64,000 nt of DNA, from positions 3,082,167 through 3,146,166 of the forward strand of contig BFEA01000010.1 of the NCBI GenBank assembly GCA_003427395.1, in the 5' to 3' direction. Shown piece after piece: positions 26,850-53,600 of this stretch. Source of the DNA: Chara braunii (lineage: Eukaryota; Plantae; Charophyceae). Every line of letters starts with the position of its first letter. The stretch's first letter is position 1. The position numbers were made by a program, and so were the translations under genes. The notes under the pieces were generated by a model. The model made no database searches and was not told where the DNA came from. It saw nothing but the letters and a program-made list of their open reading frames with translations.

Positions 26850-27594
26850 CAGGGTTACCTGACCGAACGTTCGGGGGCCCCCGGGCTGGCCCCCGAACGT
26901 TCGGGCGTTTGGGGTACCGTTCGGGGGCCGAACACCTCCAGGTTCGGCCCCCGCCAAAAAACATTTCAGGGCCTAAAAATAAGTTTTTTTTTCTGAATTG
27001 TTTTTTATGAGTTCTGTATGATGTTACCTACACGCCTATAAATTTTGAAGTTATTCTGCTAAGCCAATAAAACATTAAAAATCGTCAAAGATGGGGGTGT
27101 GAAAACGTGCTCGCCCACTCACTATTTTGTTTTTTTTTTCACTTTTAACTTTTTGATTTCACTTTATTTCGGGGCCTAAATTTTTTATTTTTTTTTTGAA
27201 AATTGTTTAATAAGTTATTGATTACTTAAAATAAATATCTGTAAATTTTCAGGCCATTTGTCAATGCCAAAAAATAATTAAAAATCGGCAAAGATGGCGG
27301 TGTCGAAAAGGTGCTGGCACACTTACTCATTTTATTTCTCTTTTTATTTTTTCTTACTTTTATCATAGTGTTTATTTTCTGTATTTGATTTTTAATTCAA
27401 ATTTGGTAACAAATTTGGATGTAGTGCCCAGGCAAGTGTTGTTTAGTTAATTTTTCTCCATAACATTTTTTTGTTTCTGGAAATTTTTGATTTTTTTTTT
27501 TTTTTTGTCCGCGTTCGGTTCGAACGGCCGACCGCCTTCCAAAGGGGTCCCGTACGTTCGGGCGTTCGGCCCGTCCCGAACGCCGGAAACCCTG
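26850..27594. mobile_element. Non-autonomous hAT-type element inserted in the E1 terminus
   Basis: TIRs CAGGGTTACC / GGAAACCCTG; flanks cttgtaag/tttgtaaa (6/8); CCGAACG subterminal motifs; the host motif resumes after the element. Confidence 0.75.
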
Positions 27595-27618
27595 TTTGTA
27601 AAGGTATTCGGGCCGGCA

Positions 27619-29225
27619 ACGCTTTCGACGTTTCGGTACCGAAAACGCACTTCGGGGTTTCGGTGTTTCACTTAGTCCATTTTGTACACCTTGAACATTA
27701 CATCCCAATGCGCTTCCAGTATTCCGGTACCGAAAATTCACTTCAGGATCCCAGTGTGTTACTTGGTCTATTTTGTACACCTTAAATATTATATCCCGAT
27801 GCGCTTTCGATGTTTCGGTACCGAAAACGCACTTTGGGATTTTGGTGTTTCACTTAGTTTATTTTCTGCATATAGAACATCATATCCCGATGTGCTTTCG
27901 GTGTTTCGGTACGGAAAAAACACTTCGGGATTTCGGTGTTTTACTTAGTTTATTTTCTAGATATGAAACATTATATCCCGATGCGCTTTCGGTGTTTCGG
28001 TATCGAAAACGCACTTCGGTATTTTGATGTTTTATTTAGTATATTTTCTACATATGGAACATTATATCCCGATGCGCTTTCGGCGTTTTAGTACCGAAAC
28101 GCACTTCGAGATTCGGTGTTTTACTTTGTCCATTTTGTACATGTTGAATATTATATTCCTATCTTCTTTCGGTGTTTCGGTACCGAAAACACACATCGGA
28201 ATTTAAGTGTCTTACTTAGTCCATTTTGTACACGTTGAACATTATATCCCGATGTACTTTCGATGTTTCAGTACTGAAAACACACTTCGGGATTTCAGTG
28301 TTTTACTTAGTTTATTTTTCTACATATGGAACATTATGTCCTGATGAATTTTCAGTGTTTCGGTATCGAAAATACACTTCGGGATTCGGTGTTTTACTTA
28401 GTTTATTTTCTACATATGAAACATTATATCCCGATGTGCTTTCAACGTTTCGGTACGGAAAATGCACTTCTGGATTTCGGTGTTTTACTTAGTTCATTTT
28501 GTACACATTGAACATCTCATCCCGATGCGTTTTTTGTGTTTCGGTCCCGAAAACGCACCTTGGGATTTCTGTGTTTTACTTAGTTTATTTTCTACACATG
28601 AAATATTATATCGCGATGCGCTTTGGTATTTCGGTACCAAAAATGCACTTCTGAATTTCAGTGTTTTACTTAGTTTATTTTCTACATATGGAACATTATA
28701 TCCCAATGCGCTTTCCGGCGTTACGGTACTGAAAACGCACTACTTCATAATTTCAGTGTTTTACCTAGTTTATTTTCTACATATGAAACATTATATCCCA
28801 ATGCGTTTTTCGACGTTTCGGTACCGAAAACGCACTTCGAGAGTTCGATGTCTTACTTAGTTTATTTTCTACATATGGAACATTGTATCCCGATGCGTTT
28901 TCCGTGTTTCGGTACTGAAAATGCAGTTCGGGATTTCGATGTTTTACTTAGTTTATTTTCTATACATGAAATATTATATCTCGATGCGCTTTTCAGCGTT
29001 TCGGTACCGAAAACGCACTTTAGGATTTCGGTGTTTTACTTCGTCCATTTTGTACACCTTGAACATTATATCCCGATGCGTTTTCGGTGTTTTTGTACCA
29101 AAAAGCCACTTCGGGATTTCGGTGTTTTACTTCGTTTATTTTCTACATCTTGAACATTATATCTCGATGCGCTTTAGGTGTTTCGATACCGAAAACGCGT
29201 TTCGGGATCTCATTGTTTTACTTAG
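27619..29225. repeat. ~91-bp satellite array (~17 units) with internal palindrome GTGTTTCGGTACCGAAAACGCAC
   Basis: cattatatcccgatg recurs with a ~91-bp period. Confidence 0.9.
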
Positions 29226-30876
29226 CGCCTCACTGCACTATTGTCCAATGTCTAAATTGGTCAATTAATCCTCGCTACACTTACTGTCCAGTGTCCGTGT
29301 GCGAGATGGCTTGGGCAGTGGTTGAAAACCCCATGGACAATCTACTGTCCATTAATGGATAAGTCCCAACCCGCAAAATATATTTTATGAATGTTTTTTT
29401 TCAAGGAACTCACAGCTCAGTGCTGAATTTGCACAATGTAGCTGGCAGGGAGCCTCTGGCGCCTGTGATATTTTTAAAGTATTTTGTTCTTTTTTTTTTT
29501 TTTCTTTTTCTTTTGCAAACCGATTATATCCTTGCGTTCGAGTGCCAGGCTACGCTGTCAGGCGGGCCGCACGGGTCACCTTTTTAATTCGGGCGAAAGG
29601 ACCCTACCTGGTTGCCTGCGACCTGCGTGCTTCATGGTTTTCTATGTGGTTGGTTCCCTACGTTATTGCATGCCTGCCTGAACTCTTGCTTACCTGCATG
29701 CCCGTCTACTCACCCACCTCTTTGTCTGTCAAACGTTCGCATTGACTCTGTGTCTGCCTGCATGGTTATCTGCGTGTGTACTTAAAAAAAAAAAACGTTG
29801 CCCTTGCTCTATGTCCCTAGCTTGTGCGGATCCCCTACCTGCATGGGCCGTTATTTGTGTGCCCAAACTGCCCCGGGCCCGTGTTTCTGACCTGCCTGGA
29901 GCCTGTGCCCTCGACCTAACCCTGGTCTGTGTCATCGACCTGCCCCAAATCTGTCTGTCTGACCTATGCATGACCTTGGTATGGGTGCAGGGCAGGATTC
30001 GCATTGGCACGTGGGCCTGCATGCCTGTCCCCGACTTCACCCTCCAGCTATGTCCAAGGCCTTTTTCTTCGTCTTGACTGCATGGCTGTCCCAAACCCGT
30101 GTCCGTAACCTACCTTGGACTTGTGGTTTCGACCTGTGCATCTCATTGGGTCTGCCTGCCTGTGTCCCTGCGTGCCTGCCTGTGTCTCTGCGTGCATGCC
30201 TGTGTCCCTGCGTGCTTGTCTGCCTGTACCCGATTGTTAGAGGGACTTTAATTTTTTTTTAATTCATGAAAATTTGTGTTTCAATTTTAAAATTAAGAAG
30301 GAATAAATAATTTGATAATTTTTTTTTTTTTTATTGTTGCAAATTGATAGATTAACAAATTGATAAAGCAAACTCATTTCGTTAGACTGAAATTGTGCAT
30401 CTCATTGCACTTCTAATGTCGATGATCTTGTGTCAATCATCATGGCACAATCTGGTGAATTCAAATGCTGCTTGCAGGCAGTGATTGTGTGCTCTGATGG
30501 ACCTATTTTTATCCGGGTATACAAGGTCTCTGCTGCTAGTGTTTGTTATGCATCACTTGATGGCAGTATGGACCCTTCCCGACAATCTTTTCGAACCCCT
30601 TTCAATAAAATGATCGTTACTTAATTCCAATTATACGCATACATGTAACGATGAGAGAGATCAGGCAAAACTCTAGAAACTTTAAATTACCAACAATAGA
30701 GTCACATTTATAGTCACCAAGCGGCGAGCACATAGCACAAGTCTATAACACAACCTCTGCTCCCACTCCTTTTGTTAATTTTTTTTTTTTTTTTACTAGA
30801 TTGTAAATTTAATATTTTAATTATTGAATAAAAATTAAAAAAAATCGAGCAAAGTTGGGTGAGCTTGTTGTGTTCA

Positions 30877-32277: not shown

Positions 32278-35200
32278 CAGTTTTCTTCGCTTGTATTGTA
32301 GAAGTCGACTCCAGAGCTTATCAACATCTGTTGTCGTCTACTTCTCATGATCAATTTCGCAAAAATAATTGATAAGATGAAGTTGAGGCTTATTTTGTTA
32401 ATATACCTGTAGCAAGACCAATTCAAAAAAAAATTAGAAACAAATAGTATAAACATCAACTTAACACACATTAATCATAAAAAAATGGAGTATTCATTCA
32501 CTTGCCATAATTAAATTATGACCCTTTATCGTGCATGCTATCAACAACAGGCTGAGGGTTTAAAATTTTAACGACAAACAACATATGACATACATGCTGG
32601 AAACACACTCTTAAACAACATAGATAACAGACACGTCACCTATGCAATATGCGCTTGTTCCAAACACCTCGGCAAAGCCGCAAACACCCCACAACCCCCC
32701 CACAATCCCCCCCCCCCACTACCCAGGCCCCCTCCCCCCCGAGTTGAATTTTATTGCAGATTCGGGGTCCTCTTGCCGAGCGTAGCAGAACCGCATTTTT
32801 CAATAAATTTTGAAAAAAAAATCTAAGATGTTTCTTGGGCTGCTGGCTCACTCAGTCGGGCCCCCTGTGCCCAACTGATCGGGCCCCGTCCTCAAGCAAC
32901 TAAATTATGCTCTTAGAACTTTGCATTCAATTGTGAGGTCCATACCCTCGATTAATGTTTGTATTGAATTTGATTCATTTTTTTTTATTTTTTTTTTATA
33001 TAATAAATAAAAGCAACTCATTTGCTTACCTGAATGACTTCTTATAACATGCAAACCACTTGAAGAGTTGCTCACAAATCGAAATGTTTGCTGATTTGAG
33101 TTCTTCGTAGACCTCGGGGCTTACATTGTTTTTGCACCAATGTCCTACATGTTTTTTCCGAAAGTGAAAGAAATCAACTACGTCAAAAAATTAAAAAAAC
33201 AACAAAAAACAATGTTATTCAGGTGGTGTTCAAGCGGGGTTTGGAGGGTGTTGGTGGGTTCTGTGCCAAAGATTCAGAGGGTTTCTTATTGTTTAGCAAA
33301 TGTTTTTAGGGTTTAATAACAAAAACCACATAGAGAACAGAGACTTCGAAAAAAAAAAATAAAAAAAAAAATGAAAATGAGACAAACCATCCCATAACTG
33401 TTGACATACAGACCTGAAATCGATTCCTCAACATATATTGGTGGTTCGCTGTTGAGCGCATCCCCCTCCCGGCCATATCACGCAAGAGTTAAAAAAAAAT
33501 AAAACCAAGAGACAACTCAGGAACGATGCAAAATAACTCCGCGAGCCGCTAAGACGGCCGTGGTATCGTCGTTCCTTCGTCGCTCTAGCCGGGTGTGCCA
33601 ATTGTACATCTTGCGGTCCCCTACGATAGGATAGGTTCCCGCGGGGCATAAGCTTTCTCTCCCTAAGAGGTTGTCATCACCCTTAGGGGTGTATCCCTAT
33701 CGAGCTACTTACCCACGTGCGAAAGTTTTTAGATTCAATTGCAGAGGTAGGTCAACCGATGACGTTTGCTCGTTCGCTATAGTATAGATACACTTGGTTA
33801 ACGCCAAGCGAACCCGAACGCCGTCCGTTCCTAAAACGCTGATCTCATAGGTACGAAGCGGATGCCGGTTAACTAGGACAGTCTCAACCAAGTGCGAAAC
33901 CCTCAATTTGATCCTAATCCCTTAGATATACCGTCAAAAAACAATTATAACAACCACACATATGATTACATCAATTGGAATCGACCGTAGACGATAGGAA
34001 CATATATCCAAAAAAATAACTGAAAGAATTTAAATCATCATCTCATATATCCAATAACACAAGATAAAAAAAAAAAAAAAAACGGCCTTCTCAGGTCAAA
34101 CACAAAAAAACAATCATACATCCGCCAACGAGGAGTTGGCTTCAACAATAACCACGATGCAACCGACAAGGTCGTCGGTCTGCCTTAGTTTTAACTTCAT
34201 GAGACGCGTTGTCAACGTTATTCATTCCACCTACCGCCGACTTACAATTAGACACACATATCTGTCTTCATCCGTTTTCAATCTTTTCGGATGATAAACT
34301 ACTTTGCGAATTATTCTTGATCAGGAGGATTGCTTGAAGTGTTGCATGCCTTTCCCTCTAGAAAGTGGTCTGAGGTACTCCTCCTCGCCCGAGCACACAA
34401 CTCGGATTTCAGAAGTCAGGTCGTCTCCACCGAATCGACAAAGTACCCTCCCGTAGAACGGTCCACTCTGGATCGATAACAGGGTCGGTTCCTTAATCAG
34501 CGAAACCCCGCCCAGATGCTTCCTAAAGATAGAAGATGTATCCACTGCAAGTAGCTTTCATATATTTTTCATTTTTCCTAAGTCATGGATAACTTAAACG
34601 AAAATAAATCGAAGGAGCTAGAGAATGAGAAACATTTGGACAGGTATAGGTAGATAGGGTCATTCGGAAAAAAATGGCTCAATCCTCGAGAAAAAAAACA
34701 CATACGTTTGACCTTTTCTGCTTCCTTTCAATCGGATTCGTTTTACGACATGCAATGAATTAATATTTTTCAAAACACAAGTCCTTTTAACAAGCAGGCA
34801 AGCGAAAAGTAGAAAGGGGACAATCTTTTTCTTCATCTTAAACAGGTATAATCAATCCTCCTTTGCAAGCATCCTTCTACCTACATGCACAACATGCAAA
34901 GACAACGAGTTCAAGAGAAAATCGGTGCAATCCCATACTCAAGTCAGACCTTACTATTCACATGCAAACACACATTTTCTTTGCCTTTTCAATGAACATT
35001 CGATTGAAAAGGGTCAAACAAAGTGTGGGTTCACACAGGAGTGAAGGGAAGTCTAAATCATTCAACTGACCTTGAGTGAAGTTTGGTCCGGCTCACTCAA
35101 GAAAGCCAGGTAATATTTCAATCGGAAGAAAATAATCGTCGTATAATATAAAAATATACAGCTCACAGCTTCACAAGTTGTGGTTATTTCACTAAACGAC

Positions 35201-37392
35201 GGTTCGCCGCCTTCTCTAAGCGTCTGATCATACCAAGGTTGGCTCCAGTGAGATGTATGAATGAGATAACCCTCAAAGAGTCTGCTCCCATGATCCAAAC
35301 CCATGTTGTTCCAACACCCCTAACAGTCCCAACAAAGTCCCCACTGCACCTTCAACCCCAAGGATACTCCTCAACCAATTGCAAGTCCACGCCGCCTCCC
35401 ATCACCATGTCTGCTGACAACAGATACACCAACATATCGGTCCTGATCTCAAATCAGTCTCATCTGGTCTCAAAAAGGTCCAGGTGGTCCCACGTTGCCG
35501 TTGTACCACCGGATGGTCTCAAACACTAATACCTCTCGCACTGCACGCCGCAAAAAAAATAAAGGTGGCCCTGGTACAAACTGCATGTGCCGCGAGCCCC
35601 CAAAAAAGCAAAGATGTCCTTCCGGCGCAAACCGCAAGCGCTGCAACTCCAATAGCCAGTGCCTCGTGCACCCATTCCGCGACCTCTTCATGTTGTCGGC
35701 CCATGCAGCACTGTCACACAATCCCAACCGTGCACCAACACTAGCCCAATCTCTACACCATGCTGAAAGCGCTACACACCTCAAAACTTTAACAACAGAA
35801 TTACTGCTCGCCGTTGTTGTTAAAACGGGTACCACAGTCGTCCAATAACACCGCCACATGCTCACACACCACTGCCAGTCCATCGTCCAGGCCATATTGG
35901 AATCCACCATAGCCGCTGCGCAACACAAAAAGAACAACGGAGGACCACTGCTCGCCGCGCCGTCAAAGCCGGTACCACGGCTGCAATGCAACACCACCGC
36001 CTAATCACACACAAAACAAAAACGGCACCACCATGCTGCAAATTTCGGCAGCACTGGCACTGTTGTCGTGCCTCCAAATGGACAACACTTCCCCCTAAAA
36101 AAAATTGCCGCCGAGTCAAAATTTCGGTAGTGTAACCTCACTGCAAATACTGTCTTCGTCGTGCCGCCGAATGGACAACACCTCCCCTGAGGGAGACCTT
36201 GATGCCGCGACGCCATCAGTCCAGCAGCACCTCCCCACACTAAAAAAAAAACATCGGCACCTCCGCTGCAAATCCGACAGCACCTTCCCTTAGGAAGGTC
36301 TTGATGTCGCGGCGACTTTTTGACAGCATAACCCCACTAGAATAGATGCCGCTTGCCGCACCTTCCGGACCCTGACGCGGCCTTACCGCCGCAACACCAA
36401 CAGAAGGGTGGGGCAGAGAGCCTCCAGCCCTCAGCTATGGCTGTTTCCCTTCTCCTCCTCCAACTCTCTGCAGACCGCCACTCCACCAGCAGCACCTCCA
36501 CCGGCAGCACCGCCTCTCTCCAGCAGCATGCAACAGCCAACCAACATTCACACAAGTGAATGCCCCAGCAGCGCTGCCACAATTGTGAGGCTGTTGGGTG
36601 GAGTGTTGGATTTTATAGCCAACTGAAGGCATGTGGGCAACTGCTTTGCCCACAGCCAGACAAAATTTGTGGGTGCTCCTGACCCTCGATCTAAATCGAT
36701 GGCCAGGAGCTAGGAGCCTTGGTTTTCCCCCAAGGGGACCAAGGTCATCAACCCCCATAAGTATCTGATTGTTTTCCCAGGCTGGATACTCCTGTAAATG
36801 ACTGTACTCAGCCATTTACTCCAGCCTGTTCAAAACGAACAGGATACTTTTCTTTTTCTTCTTACCCCTCGTTTTTCCCTGTGAGGGCAGCTTGAACAAC
36901 CAGTCCCTTAGTCACTTCATATAGCCGAACTGGAGTCAAGCTCGGCAGGGTTTTCTTTCCCCTCCTACAGCACACACCGCGCCTGGCCGCCAACAGTGCC
37001 AGGTTCGGGCACTGTTGGTAACTGCAGCCCGTTTCATCAAGTGAACAGGCGCAATTAAACAACAACACGATGACAGAGGGGGAAACCTAAGAAGAAAAAG
37101 AAAAAGAAGAAAAGGAAGAAGCACAAGAAAAAACAAAAACAAAAAAAAACTAAGAGCAACTAACCCTTACCTACAACAAAGGGGTGTGGCAACGCTCGTT
37201 CCCGCAGCTTCAGGGACTACAAGTCCCTAAGGTCGATTTCAAAACCCAACAACCGCTCAGGCCATTCGTGAACGAGAAGGAGGTGGGGGGGAACCACGTG
37301 GTAGTGTATATTTCCATGTCCTAGCGGTAGATTCATTCGATTTTTCTCATCCTCTCGATGGATGTACCATGCGGCCAATCACAAAGTGGGTT

Positions 37393-37443
<51 letters not shown>

Positions 37444-37855
37444 GGGGTGTATATTGCCCGGTTATAGCAGTAGATACACATGGGTTTTCATCATCCCTTA
37501 CACAGAAACTCTCTGCAGCCTGTTTCTCCGAAACGAACGAGCGCAGAGTGAAACCATAGGATCCANAAAAAAAAAAAAAAAAAAAAACAATCTAAAACAA
37601 AATCCAAAAAGAAATCTAAAAGGAAATCTAAAAGAAAATCTAAAAAGAATTATAAAAAAACAGAAAAGAAAAGAAACTTGCCTCTAAAAAACGGTTGCCC
37701 GTTTCCTTTGGGCGTTGTCTCCGCCCTGGGGACTTATANTCCCCAGTCACTTTTGTATGCGTCACGTGGCGCTTTAGTTGTAGGTTTTTTTTTTTTTTTT
37801 TTTTTTTTTNTTACCGTTGGCTTATGCCAACGGTCCCATCATACCGTGGCACACT

Positions 37856-37928
37856 CATAGTCACATCGCCAAGGTGCTGCCAAGATCCGTCGAGATACAG
37901 ACCCAAGTTCGATCCTGACCGGGCTCGT
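37856..37928 (+). ncRNA. tRNA-Gly-like module convergent with the U6 fragment
   Basis: GATACAGACCCAAGTTCGATCCTGACCGG resembles the GGTACAGACCCGGGTTCGATTCCCGGCTGG arm of plant tRNA-Gly; weak A box TAGTCACATCG. Confidence 0.5.
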
Positions 37929-37929
37929 G

Positions 37930-37990
37930 AAAAAAATTGGACCATTTCTCGATTTATGCGTGTCATCCTTGCGCAGGGGCCATGCTAATC
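37930..37990 (-). ncRNA. 3' half of U6 snRNA, canonical sequence with T7 terminator; 5' half absent
   Basis: GATTAGCATGGCCCCTGCGCAAGGATGACACGCATAAATCGAGAAATGGTCCAATTTTTTT. Confidence 0.95.
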
Positions 37991-38071
37991 GGCGCGAGGC
38001 AGATCTCAGCCGCGCGATATTGATGATTGTGCAGACGAAATCGACCACGCCCAACTGCTTGGGCTGCTCCA

Positions 38072-38162
38072 AAAAGAAGGAGCTAGCCCAGCAGGGCCTA
38101 CTGGCTTCGATCCCCGCATCTGCGACCTATCAGGCTGGTACGCTACCTACTGGGCTAGCTCC
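38072..38162 (-). ncRNA. tRNA-like Pol III unit closed by a 13-bp inverted repeat and followed by T5
   Basis: A box TAGCCCAGTAGG, B box GGATCGAAGCC; GGAGCTAGCCCAG (38080-38092) is complementary to CTGGGCTAGCTCC (38150-38162). Confidence 0.65.
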
Positions 38163-39078
38163 TATTTCACATTGATATAAGAGCAGCCCTCGTATATGAA
38201 GGGTTGTAATGCCTAATAGGCAGTCCGCCTGTGGCCTAGCATGCCTTGCCTGTAGGGCCTACTAGTTCCCGGGTCGGTTGTCCGGTCTACAGTCTCGAGT
38301 GGTCTCACCACCCCATCTGGTAGGCCACAATGCCAGCTTCCTTGGACTGTGGCGTGGAAACCCCATGGACCCAAGGAAATAGAAAAAAATAAACGTTCCT
38401 TTTCCACCTTCTCACCTCGATTACACACCCAGCGTGACCATTCATTTTTGTCTACTTAGGCTCTGAGTCGCGCGACTACTATAGGTTTCATTTTAACCTT
38501 CCATGTCCGCGCTCTTCTGCGGCTTCGACAAAACGAAGCACTGTCGGCTACTGTTTTTACTTTCGAACGCCACAAGCGTCCAGGCTAAAGCTTGAAAATT
38601 TTAGTCTCTCGGTCACAGGTCTGGTCTGAATAAACTTTTAGTAACGTTAGTCTCATCAGGTCCCTCAATCCAACGAAAGAGTTGGACAGCGTCCGATGTT
38701 GAAAAAAACTGACAAATACCCTTGTCATAATATTTGCCCCGACACCGCCTCCTCTAGAACATGTATCACGATATTTGGGGTTTTCAGAGAGGTGGGTTAT
38801 ATATGCTACCTCAATATTCTCGTGATTTTCATTGACCAACTTCTGGATTTTCCACAACGTAGGGCCAAGGCCAACTTTGAAGCCCCATCTTGGAGAGAAA
38901 AAAAAGGATGCCCGATACCCCCCCAAACCCCGCCTTACCCTCCCCAACCTTCCCCTGATTCCAAAAAGTTTTTCAGCGGATTTTGGGTGTACCAGCAAGC
39001 GCGGTACAACTCCTTACTCCGATCTGAAAAAAAAGAAAGTGGAAGACTGTTTTTTTTTATTGGTAGGCTACCGCTAAC

Positions 39079-40119
39079 CAGCGTTGTCCAGCCCCAGGCC
39101 CAGGGCCCCTGGGGTCCCCGGACCCTGAGCTCCGGAGGCCTAAAAATAAACTATTCAAAAAAAAAATCGATAAATTAAAAAAATATATATAAAAAAATAT
39201 GGGGGGGTGCGCATGAACAGTCTGCACCTCCTGGGTCAAACTTTGTTTTTGCCCAACATTACCCCCTGGACCCCTCCCCCCCCTCCCTGGGGTTCCCCCC
39301 CCTTTCTCGCGGGGTTGTCCCGGGGGCCCGGGGTGCGGGGTGCCCATAGCTGGGGGTCACCGTCTGGGGCCGGGGGTGCTGCAGGCCTGGGGGTCCCCCC
39401 GCGGGGCCGGGGTCGGGGGTCACCCAGGGCTGGGGTATGAAAAAAAAAAAACTCTCAAAAAAATCCGAAAAAAACATATGTTGTGTAAAAACATTAAAAA
39501 AAAACAACTTTTGCCTCAGCATCATTTTCAAAACGTACAACAAATTTGAATTAAACAAGCAAACCAGTCTCTTTTTTTTTCTTATAAAAAACAAAAAAAA
39601 AAAGTTTGTGTCTCAGAAACGTTAGTTTTTGAAAAATTTTAAATCAATAACGAACTCAAAAAATTAAAAAAAAAACGTTTTAGTCTAGACCTTGAAAAAA
39701 TCTACAACGCCATATTTTTCGTTTTTTGTTTTGAGATCCTTTTGAAGCCTAAAAAAAACATTGAAAGTCTTGATTGCAGCGGGCCCCGGGGTGCGGTGGT
39801 CCCCACCCAGGGGGTCCGCTCCCCGGGGGTCCGCCCCGGAGGTGCCCACCCCGGGGGTCCGCTCCCCGGGGGTCCCGGGGGTCCCCTCCGCCACCCCACG
39901 CGGGGGTGCGGGGGTACCCAACCCGGGGGTCGGGGGTCCTGGGGGTGCAGGGGCCGGGGGTCCCGAGGGTACAGCCCGGGGGTGCCGAGGGGCTCCCCGG
40001 AGCGGGCATGCCCGGGGGTCCTGGGGGTGTGCTAGGGGTCGGGGACCCAGAGGGCAGGGGTCCGGGGGTCATTGCCCCACCCCGGCTCCTGCCCCGGAGG
40101 TCCTCGGGTGATAACCCTG
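39079..40119. mobile_element. Non-autonomous hAT-type element with GC-rich subterminal repeats
   Basis: TIRs CAGCGTTGTC / GATAACCCTG; 8-bp TSD ccgctaac/ccggtaac. Confidence 0.8.
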
Positions 40120-41241
40120 CCGGTAACCAAATGGCCTGAGTGGCCAGCTGCGCACAGGTCAGTAGTCAGCGGCAGCGGACAGTGGGGGTGCAACCGTACC
40201 CTTCACCAAAAATAAATTATGACTCTATAGTCTCAACAAATGACCTGCTGATTGGCAGGAAGAGCGAATAATGTAAGTTGTTCGGTGACCTACGGATTGA
40301 TGGGTAACTACTTAAGGTATAATTGTAGTGGTTGTAATAATATTTGCATTGCTCACCGACATGATGAATGTTCTGTGTGTTCGTGAACTCTTTTGTCTTT
40401 GCGTTCACATTCTTCCGGTTCGCATTGAGAGTGAATCGTAGCAAATGACACATGTCATCATATCGAAAGAACTACAGGAATGGGTGGTTCGCAAAGAGAG
40501 TCAACTAATAATGATATACCTGCACGCAAAAACACACGATTTTTTATATTTTTGTTTTAAGAAAATCAAAATGTGCTTAGAATATTGCAAACTGAAGTTT
40601 CTCAATAGATTTGGACTATATTCAGCAACAATAGTACAACCCCCAACTCTGATTTGAAAAAAAATAAGCGAATGACTGTTTGTTGACTGGTCGGCAAACC
40701 GCCGACCGTCCCCACAAGACGGTCCTTAGTTGGGGTCATTGGTCGGCGGTCTGACAACTCAGACTTGCATACATTAAAGAGGAAGAGAGATAGTCATGGA
40801 AGATTGTCTTGACTTACCTGCGTACAAGACTCTGTAGGAACGATTTCCATTGGCGGAAACATGAAACCACAAGACCAAAAGTAATGAAGAATTCCACGAG
40901 TATCTGAAGTTCTCTGAAGTTTGGCTGCTTTGATTTGTTTTTCCTCGAGTTCAAAGGCGATCTTCCGAAAGTTGTTATCCTTGATAAAAGTCAATCGCTA
41001 ATTGTTTGTCAAGGAACTCCTTCAAAACTGTTTGTCCTTACTTTCCACGACACTCGTTGTGATGACACCAAATTGATTTCGTGTAGGGTTCATTTTTTTA
41101 TTTCACAGGGTAGAACCACTCCTGCAATCAATCGTTTGACAAAAAAAGATATGTTAATTATGTTATTTGAAGTTATTACCTTGGCTAGCAGCCGGGTCGC
41201 CCGGGTCCACGTTCTTTGCCCGAGTGGAAGGTCCCAAAAAA

Positions 41242-41296
<55 letters not shown>

Positions 41297-43799
41297 TTTT
41301 TCTAAAAAATAATAAAAAAGAAAACTATGTTGTGCAGAAAATATAAATTGAACAACTTAATACAACCCATAAGCAACACAGTGAGGCCAATGCTCACCGA
41401 TTGCCCTGTTACACCGTCGACCATCCCAACAGCTTGCTCTACATCAGACCACATTCAGAACAGTCAGCTGGAGCGCAGATTGGACATAGCTCTAAAAACC
41501 CAAAACACACAGGGTATTGTCAAGTGTTCGAGAACCTAACCAGGTACCCTACAAGAACTGGCTACCTCCAAGACTCACTCTGAAGAACTGGCTACCTCCA
41601 CCAACAACCCCCCAGCCACGACCATTAACCACACAAACTAACACTACGACGCCCACAAACCACTAACCCAACACACAGCACCCACACAACCACAAACCTC
41701 TCCCCTGACCACTCCTCCCAGTGCACGAACCCACCTCAGAATATCTGCCAAACATATCCCCCTCACTACCCCATCAGCACAGAACACACGCAGGAAGCCA
41801 ACACAAAGGAGATGGCCTAGTATGCTCGGTACTAAACAAGAGACGCTCGATCAAGAACTAACTCTCACTAACCCCTGAGACAAAAGAGCACACCAAATTC
41901 CTCAACAACCAACCTAGCGTTCCAACCACCCCACAGTTCCCCAGTACATCTCATTAAATCCCACACAGCAGCTTCCCGACAGGACAATCGCACCAACCTA
42001 ACACCTCAATTGACCTGTGCTCAACCACCTTCAATCAAACCCCCCAATAACACAACTAAACACAGTCCAATCTAACCCTTCCCAACACACAAACACAACC
42101 CTCACACCCCCTTACCAGAGCCAAGCATCAGGAGGAAGCCAAGGAAAGAGAGCTCAACAACCTCGGAGGAGCATCCCAAAAGAGAAGGGAAGCAGGCACC
42201 CTACAGGCTATACAAGAGGGAACGATAGATGGATGAAAGGTGGACTAACAGTAGAAGATGTACAAAGCCAGAAGGGACAAAGAAACCGGAAGAGGAACGG
42301 GCCCGCTGAAGAAGACGGACGTCTACAGGGCCAGAGTACAACTCACAAGAAGGAGGAACTTCTGCAACGGACACGATATTCCAACCTCAACATAAAAGAG
42401 AGAAATGTCTTAAGATAGAAAGTTAGAGAAACAAGGACAACACTATGCCCAAACCCAGATCTGGAATAGGAAAATATTACATGCAATCTATTAGAGTCTG
42501 GAAGCAGCTTCAAACTGGGCCTGAAACTCAAACTAGGGGAGGTTAGACAAAACCTCCAGGGTTTAGGGTTTAAGCAAAACAAATTTAGAAGAGGGGTGAT
42601 GGGCCCACAACCTAGTTTTCCTAGTTTTAAAGGAGAGATCATACGGATCCCCACAGGGTCTCCGAGAGGGAACAAGGTAAAGGCAGAGCACCATGAGACA
42701 AACAACAACGAGAGCGGTACGTAGAAGGAAAGAGAGAGAGAAAGTAGTAAAAAGGTGGGTCTACGACCCAGTCGTTCCATTCATTTCTAGCTAACCACAG
42801 ACGGATTCGACAGAAACTTAACGGTCGAGAGGAAATGGATACAACTGACCTTCAAGATATCAGGGAGATAATATGACACAAACTTGGGTGAAACTTGAGA
42901 GTACTCCGAGAGGATGATGTGAGGCTTAGATCAGAGTTAGGAGGGTTATTAAATAGGCGGAGCGTGGAAGGTAAGCTGGCTGATGTTGTCACATACACCC
43001 GACTAGAATTGTGAGGTCCCCGACCTTTTTTTCATAAGTTTTAATACAAGCTCCTCTAGCAGCCAGGGTTTCTTGTTTTTTTTAGTGTTGGTTGTCAATG
43101 GGGGTATAAAATGGTTTTAAAGGGGCTAAAGGGGTTTAAAGGGTGGTGACTTACTATAATTTTAATTTTTTATTATTATTATTATTATTATTGTTATTAT
43201 TATTATTATTATTTATAATTGTTTTTTTACGTGAGGAATTTTGATGTGACCCTCCACGAAAAGTTGTTTGGATTGCAATTCCACACAACATATATTTTTT
43301 GACTATTTTTTTTAATAATTTTGACAATTTTATTAAAAGAAAATTATGCGTTGATTCTGTTCGCAACCATGCTCGGGGGTCGTGACAAACCGGGCGCCCG
43401 GGCGCCATCCGGGTGCGACTTTGGGATCCGGACGCCCAGGAAATCCCCCAAGCCCTTTTGCGCAAACATTGTTTTTGCTATAATTAAAAACTATTGTGAT
43501 AATGTTTTGACAAGGTAGGAAAATTTATTAACAACCAGACCACCGACCGATGGCCCCGACCGCCGACCGACTTGCGGGACAATCGGTGGTCTATCGACCA
43601 GTCAGAAAACAGTCATCCACTTATGTTTTTCCAGATCTGAGCTGGAGTTTGTACTGCGCTTGATGAGTACAACCCAAATCCGTGAGAAGGTTAAGGTTCG
43701 ATTTTTTTTTATTTGGGGGGGTGGGGGATGTGTCGTTGGGAGGTAGGTGGGGGTTGGGGGAGGGTTCTTCAAGGGCGTGTTTAGGGACTGTTCTCAGAT

Positions 43800-44630
43800 A
43801 CTTGCAGGGGGTCTTAATGTGGTGCGTGCAGTGCGGTTGAGAGGGAGTGTAGGGGTATCCTGGACGTACTTACAGGGGGTCCGCAGGGGGGGTCCTGAAG
43901 GACTGTGACGGAACACCTGTCGGCAGTACTACAAATGAAAACACAGTCTTGAATGGTCTTTTGGAGGACTGCTCTAGGGTACTCTGGGTGGTTGTTTGCG
44001 GGGCCATTAAGGGGTTTGCAGGGGGTATAGGGTTTAGCGTTTAGGGTTTAGGGCTTAGGGTTTACGTGGTGCATGGTTCAAAGGGGTTGGGGGGAAGGTT
44101 GATGGGTGAGGGGTTCTCAGGGTTTTTTTCAGAGACTCGTAGAGGGTACTTAGAGGGAGCTTTGAGAGGGTATCTGGTGTGTGGTTTAAAGCGAGTGGAT
44201 GGGTTTTGCAGGGGGTACTTGCAGGGGGTCTGTAGGGGGGGATCCCGAAGGACTGTGACAGGGTACTGCAGATGAAAACATAGACTTGAATGGACTTTTG
44301 GGGGACTGCTCGAGGGTACTCTGGGTGGTTGTTTGCGGGGCCATTTAGGGGTTTTGCAATGGGTACGTGGTGCATGGTTCAAAGGGGGTGGGGGGAAGGT
44401 TGTTGGGTGAGGGGTTCTAAGGCTTTTTTTCAGGGACCGATAGAGGGTACTCACAAAGGGCCTTGAGAGGGTACCTGCTGTGTGGTTTAGAGGGAGTCGA
44501 GGAGGTTTTTAGGGGGTACTTGCAGGAAGTCTGTTGCGGGGTCTCGATGGACTGTTTGAGGGGACTTCAGGGGGTACTTGCAGGGGCTCTGCAGGGGGGA
44601 TGTTGAGGTCTCCAAGGGTCGCTTCGTTGG
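43800..44630. repeat. G-rich imperfect tandem duplication (~300-350-bp period) containing a short TTTAGGG tract at ~44030-44065
   Basis: gggtactctgggtggttgtttgcggggccatt at ~43977 and ~44314; gtggtgcatggttcaaagggg at ~44066 and ~44367. Confidence 0.7.
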
Positions 44631-44634
44631 GTAT

Positions 44635-44681
<47 letters not shown>

Positions 44682-46692
44682 GCACGGGGCTGACCACTGG
44701 TTAGGGGTAATATTGTGCATTGACCTTAGCGCTTAAATATCGCACGAAGTTCAAAAGAAGCACGCTGAAGAAATTTGGTCCATAGTTTCAATGAATCTTG
44801 GTCCTCCGAATTCTCACACTAAGGAATAATCCAAGATTCGGGGCAATCAACAGGAAACCAAAGTTGTAATTCAATTGTCATGACGTTGAATATTTGGAAT
44901 CGTTGATTACAACGAGTAGGATTCTCAGAGGCTATATGCCCAGCAACCATTCTATTGATCGACATTGTAAGAGGTCGCTTTATCTTCAAAATAGTCCAAA
45001 AAGCTATGCAAGTCATACTGGAGATGATCTACGAAGAGAAATTTATTGATTGCGGTCATGCGTCGTTGTCACTAGTCTATTAACAACACTTTTTGCATAT
45101 TCTGAAAATTGTTCATGTTATAGGCTTTGTTTCGTGTTTTTTTTTTTTTTTCTTATTTTTTTTTTCAAACAATAGAACCTTGGGTTTCTGGCTCATTGTC
45201 CATTCCGGGGAGCGTCAACCCGGTCCCTATTCAACCGGTAAGTCACAAAATTTACATGTATTATACTTACTCACGCTCCTCCCCCTTCTGGTGTGGAGGC
45301 ATTGAAGCCGACATTGATTACTTCTCGTGGAAGGATGTACCAAACTTCACCCCTGCCTAAGTTAGCCTTCCCTACGCTCTCTCCCAACCTTATCTCTTCC
45401 TGCTTGCCGAACACTTTACCACTTGTTTCGTCGCCTTCTGAATCGACCTGTTATCGCTTGAACTTACTTTTGAATCTGGGGATTCCAGAATGCGGTTTGG
45501 ATTCTCCTGCTCTGGTGCATTTCCGCTTAAGCCCTAAACCCTAAACCCTGATACTCCTAATTAGGCTTTCTCTTCGATTTTGGGGTTCGCCTTCCTCTCC
45601 CGTTTTTTAAAGTGTGTTGCAGCCCTGTGCCTCTTTCCTCCTTCGCTTCCCCTTTCTAGTACCTTACCTTGCTTATCTTTTGCTTGTTGTCCCCTTCATT
45701 GCTCGGTTCCTTTCCTCCCTCGTTGCTTGCTTTTCTGTTGACATGTTGCCTTACCTTCTCATTCATACACCCTACACCCTCTGCACCTTTCTGCATTGTT
45801 ATTTTTCTCTCATTCAAAAAGAAATTAGAAGTTTGTAGCGGGGTAGGCGGCGGATATAAGGGTGTTCGTAGTGGTAGTGTGGTGCGCGCTGTTGGGGAGG
45901 AGTATAGGGGTGTTGGGGGGGAGGTTATGAGAGTGTTGATGGGATTATTGAGGGCTCTCGGACTTAAAGTTAAAAAAAAACTTTAAGAAAAAAATGCAGG
46001 GTCTGGTAGGTGCCGACTAGCCAGTGGTTGGCTGCTCTGCCCCGGACCAATCTAGGGCTACCAACTCCCAGCATGAGTACTCTGCTGTTGGGTTGCTAGA
46101 GTGACTCCGAACCAGTTGCATGCAACATAATTGAATATATGTTAGCGGACTATCCTATGAACACTTTTTATGGCATAATGTACTTTATGCAAAATCCTTT
46201 TTTTTTGCATAACATGTTCCCCAAGTATTCCTTGTCGAGGTTTTTTCAAACAACCAAGGTGTTTCGGGGAGGCTGATTGGTGACACAAAAAAAATGGCTA
46301 TGAAGCTCAGGCTATAACATAGCAGTTATTAAAGTTTATTCACTTTTTATTTCTTTTATGAATTATGTTGTTTTTTATTTTTGCCTTAAAAATGACGTTT
46401 TTTATTTTTGTTGCCTGATTTTACACTCAAATTTTATAGTGAGGTTGACTTATCATATTGGTGTTTGCTACTTATATTTTGCTCAATGTGTGAGCACTGG
46501 ACACAAATTTGTCAACAGATAGAGAGCAACACTACAAAATTTCAAGCACATCGAGATCTTCTTGCTCAAACGAAGAACGACACAAAATTGTTTGTTGATC
46601 TTTCAATCTACAAAAGGAAGCAGTTGATGAGGCTACCATTTTCAACAAAGGAAGGATTTTTTTCACACTTGCTGCTAACGAGGCGTTTTGGG

Positions 46693-48995
46693 CAAGTTAG
46701 GTGCGCATGTTCACTAGGAGCTATGGTACAAAGTCTACTGCCTTATATATCTATCGATCAAAAAGTCATTTGCTTTGTAATTCTATAAAGTGCAATTTCT
46801 ATTTTTTTTTGAAATTTTAGATTTTTTTTATTCTGTTATGCGTGCCTTAATATAGCCTACTTGGACTTGACCACATACATGCAGGCAGACTTTGGGCAGT
46901 CACACAAGGGAGGTAGGCATGCACACAAGTCGCCACGCAAGTAAACAAGTGGACAGGTGGGCAGGCAAAGAGGCAGGCAAGCAAGTATGCAGACAAACAA
47001 CCAGGTACGTGGATTGACAAAAAGGTAGTGAGGCAGGCCAGTAGGAAGGCAGACATACAGTACAATGACAAACATGCAGTTGGTCGACAAATATGTAGGC
47101 TGCTAGACAGCCAACCTTTATGCAGGTTGGCAAGCCAGGTATGCAGGTAAATTGGCAGCTATAGTAGTCACCTGGTATGTCTATCAGTCAAAAAATCGTT
47201 TGCATTATGAAGTGTTACTTTTTTTCGAATTTATATGTGCCTAAACGTAGTCTGCCTGGACATGAAAACATATGTGTCTAGCTGGCAGGCAAGCGCACAA
47301 GCAGGCTTTGGGGAGTCAGGCAAAGCAGGTGGGCAGGCATGTTGATTGTTATGCACACAAGTATCCACGCAGGCAGACAAGTGGACAGGTGGGCAGACAA
47401 ACAAGCAAGTAAGCAGCCAGGTGGACCATCAGAAGGCAGGCAAGCAAATGACTGATTGTGATTGAAACAAATCAATGAACTGTTGAAATTTAGACCGAAG
47501 TTAAACTCTGCATGACTGATTCTCATGGAACCAACTCAATGAAGCAATATTTTAAATTACATGGGGCCGATCAGCTCAGTGATAATATCTCAAGGCAGTA
47601 ACCCTTTCGAAAGAAATAGGTAAATAAAGGGTGGCGGACATATGAATCAATCATTTTCTTTGTTTGTAAAATTAATAAAAAAATATTAAAAAAATATAGA
47701 AAAAAATTGATTTAACGTTCTATAATTTTGTCAGTACTTACAAAAAATAGAATTTTAAATGAATGAATAACAGTAAAAAGTACCAATAAAAAATAGCAAT
47801 AAAACATAGCAGTAAATAGAAACTAGATGAAAGAACAATTACATGCTTGGAACCTTCATTTGAAACACGTCCGGCGTAAGCTGTAATGAACACGTTTTTC
47901 ATTTGATCGATATCATCAATCTGTAGATCATAAAGAAAAGTAACGAAAAACCACTGTTAAATTTATAATATACAGCCAGACCACCAGAGTAGCCCTGGCC
48001 ACTTGCCCGACCGGACCAATAAAAGAATATATAAAAAAACTACAAAATATTTCATTTTATATTTTAAATTAGGCAAAGAATTTTGAATTTTTGATGTAAC
48101 CCCGAGGTAAAAGTTATTCACTTTATTTTTTTGTCCAACGTAGTTCTTTTTTATTTTTTTAGAAATTTTTAATTTTTTTTTTTGCTGGGACCGTACGCCC
48201 GGACAAATAAGGTGGACCTGGGCAGTCCGGCTGGTAGCCTAGATATCCAGACAAAAATATTAAAAATAAACGTGCAACATTAATTTAAATACGAAAGGAA
48301 AAAACTTCAAAAGAAGCGTTTATAAAATAAAACATACCGCAATCTGAGACATATAGGACACATATGTTTTCATGTCCAGACAAACTATGTTTAGGCACAT
48401 ATAAATTCAGAAAAAAGTAACACTTCATAATGCAAACGAGTTTTTGACTGATAGAGATACCAGGTGACTACTATAGTTGCCAACGTACCTGCATACCTGG
48501 CTTTTCAACCTGCATAAAGGCTGACTGTCTAACAGCCTACATATTTGTCGACCTGATGCATGTTTGCCATTGTATTGCATGTCTGCATTCCTGCTGGCCT
48601 GCCTCACTACCTTTCTGTCAATCCACGTACCTGGTTGTTTGTCTGCATATTTGCTTGCCTGCCTGTTTGCCTGCTCACCTGTCCACTTGTTTACTTGCGT
48701 GGCGACTTGTGTGCATAGCTACGAACATGCATGCCTACCTCCCTTGTGTGACTGCCCAAAGTCTGCTTGCATGTGTGACTATTTGTCCACTTGCCTGCGA
48801 CGTGGACACATATGTGGTCAAGTTCAAGTAGGCTATGTTTAGGCACGCATAACAGAATTAAAAAAAATCTAAAATTTCAAAAAAAATAGAAATTGCACTT
48901 TATAGAATCACAAAGCAAACGACTTTTTGATCGATAGATATATAAGGAAGTAGACTTTGTACCATAGCTCCTAGTCAACATGCGTACCTAACTTG
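46693..48995. repeat. Long inverted repeat: arms 46693-47278 and 48357-48995, ~1.08-kb AT-rich spacer
   Basis: caagttaggtgcgcatgtt..actaggagctatggtacaaagtctac is mirrored at 48950-48995; the inner ends catatgtgtc/gacacatatg match. Confidence 0.9.
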
Positions 48996-49888
48996 TCGCC
49001 CTTCAAATAGGTTGACCACACTGCCTGAAGGTTGGCTGTATAGATCATCACAAGGTATGGTAGGAATGACACAAGGAAACATCAGAAGAGGCAGGCAAAC
49101 GGGAAGAGGGAACAAAAGGAGCAAGAGCCAATGACAAAACAGGATGGGAAGAGCAGGGAGCAAAGAATAAAGATGGGTTTGTTGTGTATGTGACATCACC
49201 AAGTTCAGATTACGGAGAAGGAACATAATTTTTTGCTTGTCTGTATTTTCTTTGTCTATTGACTCTATTCTTTGTTCCCTCTAGCCAATCAAGGATCATA
49301 CTAAATGTATATTCCTGAGCAAAACTTGCGAGCAAAGTTCCTCTGCAGCAGATTCCAAAGATATTATAGACTGACCCCCCTCCCCGGTAATTGTTTGATT
49401 TATAAATTGAATACAGCGAAGTTCAGACCAAATTTTAAGTTATGTGGGGAATTAATCGAAGACACGGACCATCAAACACGTTTTCAATGATTACTCAGCA
49501 AGAAGTGTGTCGATAAAGATGACAACATTGCCATTCCCGCACCTCGACGAGTTCATTCCGAAACTTGCAAATCAACACCCACTTCCTGATGAAAAATGTA
49601 AGTTTTTGTTTTCTCTTTTTGTAGCTATACGAACCTATACTCCTTGTCGAAGATTATCAATTAATTATGGCTGTTGGCAAACTCTCCAAGTGATGTTTTT
49701 TTAATTAAATTTTAAAATTTTGATATAGGTACAACTAATTTGAAAATTTAAAACAGATCCTTATGGTCCACCGTTGTAAGATGTCTAGGGGGCTCTCCAA
49801 CTAATTTCAATCTTTGTGTTTTTAAAATTGAAACATGTACAATAAGAAATGTGAGTCTTTATGCAAGTGAGCACAATATTCTTTATAA

Positions 49889-50113
49889 CATACTTGCAAG
49901 CGGACGTCATCGGGGAGGTTCCACACGTGCGACAGACCGCCGGACCGGACCCGCGAATGTGCGCCTGACGATCAGTTACGCCCCGCCCCCCCCAATAAAA
50001 AAAAATGACCCCGTCCGGTCCGGTCCGGGTCCGTCTAGTCCGAGGGGAGGGTGCCGCGCGCGGCAAAGCGGGCCGGACCGGACGCTCGTCCGGTCCGTCT
50101 GCTTGCAAGTATG
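49889..50113. mobile_element. hAT-like MITE
   Basis: TIRs CATACTTGCAAGC / GCTTGCAAGTATG; flanks ctttataa/gtttatag (6/8). Confidence 0.75.
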
Positions 50114-50618
50114 GTTTATAGCATACAGGGAACGAGATATTGCAACCTTGTTCAACGTCAACGCTCTAAGAATAACGGTGAGTTGATTTTTTTAAAAAAA
50201 AATTGTTAGAATTAATTATTAATTCTAACAAACACTCATTTCCAAGACCCCAACAAACACCAAACTTGGCACATACAGACCTTGACCACGAAGTACAACA
50301 GCGGAGGATTTTAAAAATTAAATTCTAAAAAATTGATCAAAAATGCACATTTTAGTGTCGAGGAGGTTAAACCACATGTTCCTTTCATGATGTCTTGCCC
50401 GGGCCTCGTAAGCCCCTAGGGCGACCAGTATCCCGAGCCATGACGAGGCTGGCAGTACCGGATGCTCCCTTGCCTACACCGCCCACGAGAATAACACGGA
50501 AGGGGAAAAAAAATACTAATAAAAAATATATAAAACTAGGAATAAAAAAAAAAACAATGCATGTGCGTGGGAGAGAGAGAGAGAGTCCATAACGAGAGAG
50601 AGAGAGAAAAACCATAAC

Positions 50619-50680
<62 letters not shown>

Positions 50681-53600
50681 GACGGGAGGGGGGAAAAAAA
50701 AAAACATGTGAATGCATTTTCACTGTCAATTTTTCTTTTTTTTAGGTATTGTTTGTCCATGCCCAGGTACCCCAGGCGTTAGACCCCCCCGGGCGTCATG
50801 ACCGAATGACTGACAACTTGTGACAATCTTCCTAGCTTTTCAGTGGCATGCTATGTCTCTCTCTCTCTATCTATGTATCTATACATCTACGTATCTATTT
50901 ACATATCTATCTACCTATCTATCCACCTATCTATCTTTGCGGCAAATATCAACCATTAAAATCAAAGATGCATCTTTGTTGATAGCTTCTTGTTTTAAAT
51001 TATCTTTGTTTTGTGTGTGTACGCCCATCTATAGGGGTCTCCTTTCCAACAGTGATGTATATCGAGAACTGCAACGCAAGAACTTGTCACACAAAATGTC
51101 ACGACTTCTCGTGCAAAGGTGAACTCTTTTCTGCCCTGCTCTTCTGTACCATGTTAGAAATCAATCATTTTATTGCACTTAGTTGCTTTGGTCAATATCA
51201 AAACCTCTTGTTTTTTTTTTTTGTGTGTGATTACAGACTGGCATCCAGACCATCGTCCGCTTGTGGCTTGTGAGCCCGCACCAACCCTGAAAATCCTAAA
51301 AATTCAGGGCTCTGTTAACCGTCTCTCAGGTGAGGGCTCGCAAAAAAGAAAAATTATAATTTTAACAATCCTTAAAATTTACTAAAAAACTTTGTTATGG
51401 AAAGTTTTTGTTATTGGGCTTGTCTAGTAGCTTTACGCTATCGAGCGCATCGGTCCGGCACGGCACGAGCGGGGCGGGACCCTCCCGACCACGTCACGCA
51501 GGTGTTGGTTTGATCCTCGTCGAGAATACATCTGGAGCTTCTGCACGTCGCTCCGGTCGAGTGCGCCGGCCATATCTCTCGCGAGCCCCTACGACAGGAT
51601 ACGGCTTATGCAAGGCACGACTTACCTCCACCTTACGGGAGCTGTGACCTCCCTTTGGTGGGCGTATCCCCGCCGAGCTACGAGTCCACAGTACGAAAGT
51701 TAATCAGTTGCATCGTAGAGGTAGACCTGCCAAAGGCGTTTTTCGTTCGATGTAGCATAGGGGGTACGCGTGGTTTTACGCCTCTATCGGACCCGCACGT
51801 GAACCGACGCTTTGGGGGCTGAGGTCCCACTCACGACTCGTCGTCGGTCGACTAGGACGAATCCCACACACCACGCGTACACCTCTAAAAACATAAATTT
51901 TAGAAGACACACACACATACATAACGGCACAAACAAACAACTGACACAAATCCTTGTCCCTTCAATAACCTTCCCATAACTTCCCGATGCGGAAGTCAGA
52001 TGGGCGACGCGCGCGAGACTTTGTATAAAACCCCGCGGACGCATAGTCTTCCCATATCGACTAGCAATGTATGAATATGCATGGAGTCGCGATGATGGCG
52101 TGCTATGTAGTGCCTATAATCAAGCGGTCCTTCGTGGATCCGAGTACCACTTATGACACTTAGGTGTCAAACTCAAAGTATAGTGAAAGTTTACCCCTTC
52201 ACGATATTGCACGGCCGAAGGAACAGTCGTGCACCCCCCTCGGCACCTTCGGCCTTTAGGCTGAGTGTCTCGGTCGGCAGGGCAAATAGGCTCTGCGCGG
52301 CGGGTGATGCCTTCCATGAAGAGTCTAGGACTTGGGATGTCCTGGACAAGGACCTGAAATCCAAGGTCAGGACTAACGTCCGACTAAGAAATCTCTTTAA
52401 GAAGCATACAACAAATAGAGGGGGGTTTCCTTCCTTTCTCAATCTCAACCCCAATTAAACCCTTAAGCATAGGTCTTTTGGCTACGATAACATCCAACCA
52501 TAGGTAAATACGTATATATATATGTATGTATATAGTGGAGAATATATACGTGACGATCACTTCTCACAATCATAGTGAGACTCCTCACAAACATATATAT
52601 GTATGTGATCGCAAACAATCAAATCCAAAGTCCGAACCACAGAATATACTTGCAATCACATCAAAGAGTCAACCAAAAGTCCACACACTACACAGAGTCA
52701 ACTTTCACCATTCTCTATACTCATACCCCCTCACTTTAGTTATTTACGTCCCAGCCTTCGTCCAATCTTCCATAATTAAATACTCAGTACCTTTGTTAAA
52801 TGGTCATTCAATAAAAGTCAGGGTGAAAACCTTAATAAAATAATAAAACTCACGAGGGCTGAAGCCTTTTAGGTTGAGTATTGAGGACAAATTGGAGTTG
52901 AGTCGCGGACCGACGAATCGGCAACCGACTTGTTATCAGTGATAATAAAAGATGATCCTCGTGGGATTAAGCTGAATATTTTCCAGATCCTGAATCAGAT
53001 GATCAAGAGGACCTGTAACACAGGACAGACCAATACTCAAACTAAGTTCATAAGTATATGGAGAATAAAACTTCATAACATATTCTCACTCAAGGTCCTT
53101 CTACTAGCTAAGCCTAGGCGTACCTCTAAGTCAGTACCCAACGCAAGGTAAACCTATAGTAGCATCTCTCCTACCCAGGGTGGATTGCCATAATTGTCAC
53201 CTGTCAAAATATAGTCCAACTCCTTTTAAAAAAAATAAAATCGGCAGCGCTTCCTGTAGGAAAAATATTTTTCCAAAATTTATGATAACTAAAACATGAA
53301 AACAAAACTAATCTTTAATTCTGGAAAGTCCAATTTTGTCTAACTCCCTGAATTAGTAAAAATTTTAGCAGCGCTCCCTTTAGAAAAGAAGCCTTTCCAG
53401 ATTTTTACTAAGTCGGATATGAACTCAGAAGCAAGACATGAGTTCAACAACTAAGACAAAATCAAACTAACTTCTTAGATTTGTATAAATTTCGGCATCA
53501 CTCCCTTTGAAAAAGTGTTAAACCAAAATTTATACAAAGTTAAGTTCAGAATCTAAAGTAACTTTGACGTCTCAAGGTCCAATTTTTTGTTTAACTCCCT

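Follow-up and report, generated by a model that had tools for sequence, protein, structure and literature searches.

The 64,000-nucleotide stretch of the Chara braunii genome analyzed here (contig BFEA01000010.1, positions 3,082,167 to 3,146,166 of the forward strand; hereafter, the window) contains a decayed, intron-split fragment of a gene for the primase-polymerase PrimPol. Our preferred reading, held tentatively and at slightly less than an even chance, is that the locus is the relic of a large transposon of the Zisupton/KDZ (Kyakuja-Dileera-Zisupton) type that captured a copy of the host PrimPol gene near its right end. Three sets of observations support this reading. First, the PrimPol exons are followed, on the same strand, by a transposon terminus both in the window and in L001, a 28.6-kb locus on BFEA01000083.1, which is the sole other Chara PrimPol-like locus compared. 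Second, all 4 complete members of the family to which the terminus belongs are flanked by 8-bp target duplications, the length described for Zisupton and Dileera. Third, an exon resembling KDZ transposases is located at 33029-33190, on the opposite strand, 13 kb upstream. In the proposed scenario, a copy of the host PrimPol would have been acquired close to the right end of one large Zisupton/KDZ-type DNA transposon and dispersed with it across the genome, whereafter deletions, an inverted duplication and nested repeats would have broken the copy found in the window.

The PrimPol-like gene is represented in the window by 4 recognizable exons, as follows.

46501-46707, plus strand: PrimPol motif III exon (plant profile positions 287-354, E=8.7e-9; open frame 46396-46785)
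49489-49575, plus strand: probable PrimPol linker exon with a P-F-P-x-L-D-x-F motif, 5' of the zinc finger (profile positions 405-433, E=0.68; open frame 49456-49701; regular-expression match)
50108-50177, plus strand: PrimPol UL52-type zinc-finger exon a (profile positions 452-473, E=0.012; open frame 50039-50206)
51050-51121, plus strand: PrimPol zinc-finger exon b (profile positions 473-496, E=0.19; open frame 50986-51270)

These are the 4 top window matches of a plant PrimPol profile (n=36), for which land-plant PrimPols were gathered with a full-length, cDNA-like Sphagnum-type host PrimPol (L003, from a metagenome scan) and which was run on the complete set of 3253 open frames from the window and L001. 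All 4 matches lie on the plus strand and are colinear with the profile; the linker exon is weak when taken alone, with its strand and order fitting those of the other exons. Each window exon was searched singly rather than within a joined spliced model. In a phmmer search against 1.84 billion representative proteins, the open frame 46396-46785 matched 2 proteins, the best match being the protein encoded at L001, CBR_g81559 (GBG67135.1, 280 aa; hereafter, P0001), with E=1e-6 and 45% identity over 65 residues. By tblastn, the motif III exon is 45% identical to P0001 and 52% identical to the Sphagnum PrimPol. All three AEP motifs (I-III) are present in P0001 itself, whose match to human PrimPol (5L2X) has E=1.6e-12; a word search with P0001, bounded by a length window, recovered P0001 only. 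Comparison of the window with L001 by tblastx yielded 3 colinear matches (46504-46755 with L001 16148-16399; 50108-50182 with L001 20498-20572, 56%; and 51049-51126 with L001 20734-20811, 54%), the latter 2 of which correspond to the halves of the UL52-type zinc finger, and at the DNA level the homology between the 2 loci is confined to repeats. A PDB sequence search with the single exons gave no match, and Pfam searches of approximately 30 window open frames gave no relevant match. Motif III retains its catalytic Asp together with the conserved Arg and Lys, and the first Cys of zinc-finger exon a and both Cys ligands of exon b are also present. None of the 4 exons contains a stop codon despite approximately 50% protein divergence from L001, which suggests that most of this divergence took place in working genes. 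Thus, the intron-split, plus-strand PrimPol-like gene proposed in an earlier sequence-only reading of the window is borne out, as a fragment.

The same reading had described the gene as decayed, and the details agree. AEP motifs I (D-x-E/D) and II (S-x-H) could not be located: profile positions 1-286 are unmatched anywhere in the window, and tblastn with P0001 or the Sphagnum PrimPol did not find the corresponding exon in the window either. In L001, the motif I/II exon (profile match, E=1e-24) precedes the motif III exon by just 130 bp, and the equivalent window site displays no homology to it. Given that this exon has left no trace in the window, the PrimPol copy is a fragment. The acceptor of the motif III exon has changed from AG to AA, and the zinc-binding His, present in L001 and in the plant proteins, is replaced by Gln/Arg, so that the C-H-C-C ligand set is incomplete, with Cys1, Cys3 and Cys4 kept. 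Due to the absence of the motif I/II exon, the destroyed acceptor and the lost His, the copy is unable to make an enzyme. Exon b ends at a conserved donor, and further exons are hence expected; none was recognized 3' of it in the window. An inverted duplication (arms 46693-47278 and 48357-48995, approximately 600 bp, 91%-92% complementary, 1.1-kb spacer), which represents either a palindromic rearrangement or an assembly artifact, begins just before the motif III exon ends and is not accompanied by a target duplication; its start inside this exon is added evidence of rearrangement. Although the host-type intron positions described below would suit a syntenic, working host PrimPol gene with long introns, such a gene is scarcely credible here, considering the missing motif I/II exon, the AA acceptor, the loss of the zinc-binding His and the inverted duplication starting inside the motif III exon, and the locus is not the working host PrimPol, in agreement with the sequence-only reading.

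At L001, the annotated CBR_g81559 omits 2 zinc-finger exons (L001 20441-20566 and 20737-20811), which lie downstream of the gene model. The second of these has TAG at a conserved Tyr codon, and L001 may be a pseudogene or contain an assembly error at this position.

The introns bear on the origin of the copy. The metagenome scan also yielded genomic Sphagnum-type host PrimPol loci (L004-L007 and L010), one of which, L006, adjoins an ordinary PRA1 gene. At 3 junctions, namely, the donor after zinc-finger exon a (phase 1, after N-N-G) and the acceptor and donor of exon b, the window, L001 and the Sphagnum locus L004 agree exactly in intron position and phase. The start of the motif III exon is likewise shared by the window, L001 and the Sphagnum locus, excepting the AA acceptor of the window. 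The retention of host-type introns indicates that the Chara copies descend from the host gene, ancestral introns included, rather than from a viral acquisition or a retrocopy; judging from these junctions, the window copy arose from the host gene by DNA-level duplication or capture, and should PrimPol be cargo, the host genome was its source. A search of viral contigs turned up nothing related to the PrimPol exon. Between the window and L001, the motif III exon shows 52% identity, against 32%-44% with land plants, and derived residues in motif III are common to the 2 Chara copies. In the phylogenetic tree of this exon, these copies group together on a long branch (support 100/99). The assignment of the window copy to a diverged, Chara-specific PrimPol clade is supported by these data. 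A separate, multi-copy PrimPol clade linked to KDZ transposases would have favored the claim of the sequence-only reading; the window and L001 do group together, but no KDZ-like exon was found near the gene at L001.

The features of the transposon family with 8-bp duplications in the window are the following.

51283-51327, plus strand: orphan right terminus (terminal inverted repeat), with an exact 14-mer at 51314-51327 and a score of 38.7 bits
12693-13651, minus strand: short element a, with terminal repeats and an 8-bp duplication
58434-59385, plus strand: short element b, with terminal repeats and an 8-bp duplication
60783-61781, plus strand: short element c, with terminal repeats and an 8-bp duplication
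14721-15141, plus strand: short element d, with terminal repeats and an 8-bp duplication

The terminal repeat of the family is approximately 36 bp long, and a 36-bp matrix was trained on the 8 ends of the 4 complete short elements. The end at 51327, which is outside the training set, scores 38.7 bits over its last 36 bp, and apart from it and the 8 training ends, no window site reaches 8 bits. It is a genuine terminus, 36-45 bp long, without a partner, and the earlier observation that it shares the right-end motif of the 4 short elements is confirmed by the exact 14-mer. The 8-bp duplications of elements a, c, and d match at 7 of the 8 positions and that of element b at 5 of the 8. The terminus lies approximately 160-200 bp past the last recognized PrimPol exon. 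A single site in L001 exceeds the matrix threshold (18.2 bits, with the exact 14-mer at 26336-26349); it, too, follows PrimPol on the same strand, with 5.5 kb separating it from the last zinc-finger exon, and neither a short-element body nor a left end was found at this locus.

The ends of the short elements read CAC...GGTTAAC on one side and GTTAACC.TCTCTC on the other. The 3 long ones (a, b, and c) contain internal tandem repeats of approximately 136-147 bp, which are dense in CTGAAA/TTTCAG motifs that may be putative transposase-binding sites. A 48-bp segment of the zinc-finger intron (50241-50288) recurs, with 98% identity and in the opposite orientation, in the body of short element d (14842-14889). 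The inverted 950-bp copies at 12693-13651 and 58434-59385 (elements a and b) were considered as the ends of a giant element of 46.7 kb, which was rejected: both have their own inner ends and their own 8-bp duplications, and their outer flanks are unmatched.

In Pack-MULE-type transduplication, pieces of host genes are captured by a transposon. The proximity of a terminus to a gene fragment, with 200 bp between them, would also suit an event of this sort, in which a non-autonomous element with 8-bp duplications took up an internal piece of the host PrimPol and the KDZ relic is not part of the same copy. Only internal exons were recognized in the window, with neither a 5' catalytic exon nor a tail exon after the conserved donor, and the homology to L001 starts exactly at an exon boundary. 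However, L001, which likewise has an orphan terminus downstream, also contains the 5' catalytic exons, showing that the family was not only a fragment, and tail exons, being poorly conserved in PrimPol, could simply have escaped detection. Capture of an internal piece alone is unlikely in our estimation.

The candidate transposase parts all lie on the minus strand.

33029-33190, minus strand: exon similar to the catalytic C-terminal portion of KDZ/Zisupton-type DDE transposases (motif by eye and by regular expression; ESM Atlas)
40797-40997, minus strand: candidate D1-like frame (from translation)
40220-40471, minus strand: candidate D2-like frame (from translation)

The exon at 33029-33190 displays an H-x4-H...C...E pattern, which is unique in the window and absent from L001, and includes the candidate catalytic Glu. 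Its top ESM Atlas cluster is a family of fungal fragments, 60% of whose members carry the KDZ domain PF18758 (score 0.94, 175 shared features). A word search with the exon gave no candidate. The candidate D1 and D2 occur only as the strings D-N-N-F and Y-D-D-M-C in the frames 40797-40997 and 40220-40471, which may be the D1 and D2 exons used in the sequence-only reading; Pfam gave no match for these frames, and the Atlas gave no usable match for 40220-40471. Of the intron-split, minus-strand KDZ transposase proposed in that reading, one exon is partly supported, through the Atlas match, whereas the Pfam and word searches were null. The spacing of approximately 5 kb then given for the 2 genes rests on the D1- and D2-like frames; counting verified exons alone, the gap between the KDZ-like exon and the PrimPol exons is 13.3 kb.

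A unit of approximately 400 bp is present twice in the same orientation on the plus strand, at 33470-33880 and 51410-51860 (66% identity over 216 bp by blastn, 73% of columns by MAFFT), with one copy shortly inward of the KDZ-like exon and the other shortly beyond the 51327 terminus. The unit has no Rfam match and may be a SINE-like (short interspersed nuclear element) repeat.

Several results weigh against a single transposon encompassing both genes. On the transposase side, the KDZ identity is that of one 54-residue exon without HMMER support: PF18758 did not match any of approximately 20 candidate frames at E values up to 1-10, and regular-expression searches of the window for a chromodomain, a helicase (Walker A), D1 and D2 returned no credible motif. 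On the side of the termini, no pair of termini with a target duplication was found around both genes in the window, no partner terminus of at least 8 bits was found within 51 kb upstream of 51327, and no target duplication paired convincingly with the flank of 51327. The 51283-51327 segment aligns with the right end of element d at approximately 83% identity across 48 bp, the homology stopping there in the inward direction, and it is only these last 45-48 bp that are common to the short elements; a terminal repeat lacking both body and partner end suits the stump of a miniature inverted-repeat transposable element equally with the end of a long element. Furthermore, the 92.6 kb that the window and L001 comprise contain 9 termini of this family in the window and 1 in L001, or approximately 1 per 10 kb, and, with termini so frequent, the coincidence at L001 alone has p of approximately 0.15-0.25. 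Finally, no KDZ-like exon was found in L001 within 10 kb on either side of the gene, and the region is crowded with unrelated repeats, which makes chance juxtaposition plausible.

Two candidates for the missing left boundary were rejected. At 32381-32402 on the plus strand, an 8-mer (32381-32388) that differs by one mismatch from the flank following 51327 is succeeded by GTTAA at the offset typical of the family, which would place the boundary at 32389; the coincidence is rare, being equalled in only 5 of 300 shuffles, but the site scores −33 bits on the matrix and is kept as a weak lead only. The left-end-like 14-mer at 15208 matches at 12 of 14 positions, but its matrix score is −1.3 bits and its flank is unmatched. 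An open frame located 43 bp past this 14-mer (15251-15583, plus strand) contains, by eye, a reverse-transcriptase-like string with an I-D-D motif; Pfam gave no match for it.

The components could accordingly be chance neighbors, that is, a PrimPol pseudogene produced by segmental duplication, an unrelated transposase relic and the stump of a short non-autonomous element. Such an origin would account for the lack of enclosing termini and of a target duplication, for the lack of a KDZ-like exon in L001, for the host-type introns, for the 51283-51327 segment having only its last 45-48 bp in common with the short elements, and it would be in keeping with the 4 short elements and many other repeats in the window. 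The fact that each of the 2 partnerless termini follows a PrimPol-like gene in the same orientation speaks against it, and we consider it a real possibility, if a somewhat doubtful one. The relic of a large Zisupton/KDZ-type transposon with a captured host PrimPol remains the reading that we prefer.

A stronger version, which overlaps with this preferred reading, holds that the transposon was autonomous, that PrimPol was a selected working part of it, serving in gap filling or replicative transposition, and that the window contains an old copy. The exons remain open despite their deep divergence, and the bacterial IEE is a PrimPol-type enzyme able to serve transposon excision (PMC9943667). However, neither the window nor L001 displays a sign of function, no intact copy was seen, no helicase motif is present in the window, and we found no published description of such an element. 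An autonomous KDZ element with its own primase-polymerase, as originally envisaged, does not materialize here, where the catalytic half of PrimPol is missing and enclosing termini are lacking; nor is the expected repeated linkage of KDZ and PrimPol seen at L001, which has PrimPol and the family terminus without a KDZ-like exon. We regard the stronger version as improbable. The role that PrimPol might have in such an element is a matter of pure inference, by possible analogy with IEE. More generally, charophytes may harbor large Zisupton/KDZ-type cut-and-paste transposons which captured a host PrimPol with its introns, maintained it by selection and employ it to propagate themselves, be it through the filling of excision gaps, repriming or the copying of the element, and they would then be eukaryotic DDE transposons endowed with a primase-polymerase; we put this forward as a doubtful, speculative proposition.

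The window is rich in microsatellites and N gaps. A tandem array of approximately 91-bp units, with at least 15 copies, occupies positions 27561-29266. Between the 2 candidate genes, at 37931-37991 on the minus strand, there is a partial match to U6 small nuclear RNA (Rfam RF00026, 56.7 bits, above the gathering score), which is probably a U6 pseudogene or a U6-derived repeat.

If PrimPol does travel in KDZ-type transposons, these would be unusual among eukaryotic cut-and-paste elements in having a DNA-synthesis enzyme, and the line between cut-and-paste and self-synthesizing elements would be blurred. The window copy, being dead and fragmentary, is one weakly linked instance and offers a hint rather than proof of a PrimPol-carrying transposon. 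The intron evidence narrows the question: any cargo is host-derived and not viral, and what is to be asked is when and how often the host gene was captured.

Compared with the host PrimPol, which combines an AEP fold with a UL52-type zinc finger (PF03121), the window copy has the same motif III, linker and both zinc-finger halves, with the intron positions and phases of Sphagnum, but lacks motifs I and II and one zinc ligand. In both Chara copies, motif III departs from its strongly conserved string R-N-R-x-F-R-L...S-S-K-A-G-K and, unlike a single housekeeping gene, the PrimPol-like gene appears to be multi-copy and embedded in repeats. Among transposons, Zisupton and Dileera elements generate 8-bp target duplications, and KDZ elements of fungi carry passenger genes such as TET/JBP (PMC12730594). 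The locus described here resembles them in the 8-bp duplications of its short elements, the KDZ-look-alike exon and the presence of a host-type enzyme gene beside a terminus; it differs in that the passenger would be a primase-polymerase, that PF18758 is unmatched and that no complete element is defined here. Our literature search found no description of a KDZ or other eukaryotic DDE transposon with PrimPol. With Pack-MULEs, the locus shares a piece of host gene, introns included, beside a terminal inverted repeat, whereas L001 also has the catalytic exons, and divergence between the copies greatly exceeds that usual for captured fragments. The insertion sequence (IS)-excision enhancer IEE of Escherichia coli O157 is a PrimPol-type protein with polymerase and end-joining activity that promotes the excision of IS629 (PMC9943667; bioRxiv 10.1101/2023.06.07.543989). 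It is bacterial and, unlike the cargo considered here, is not carried within the insertion sequence that it helps, but, likened by function and not by sequence, it sets an example of an enzyme of the PrimPol family that cooperates with DDE-type mobile elements at excision.

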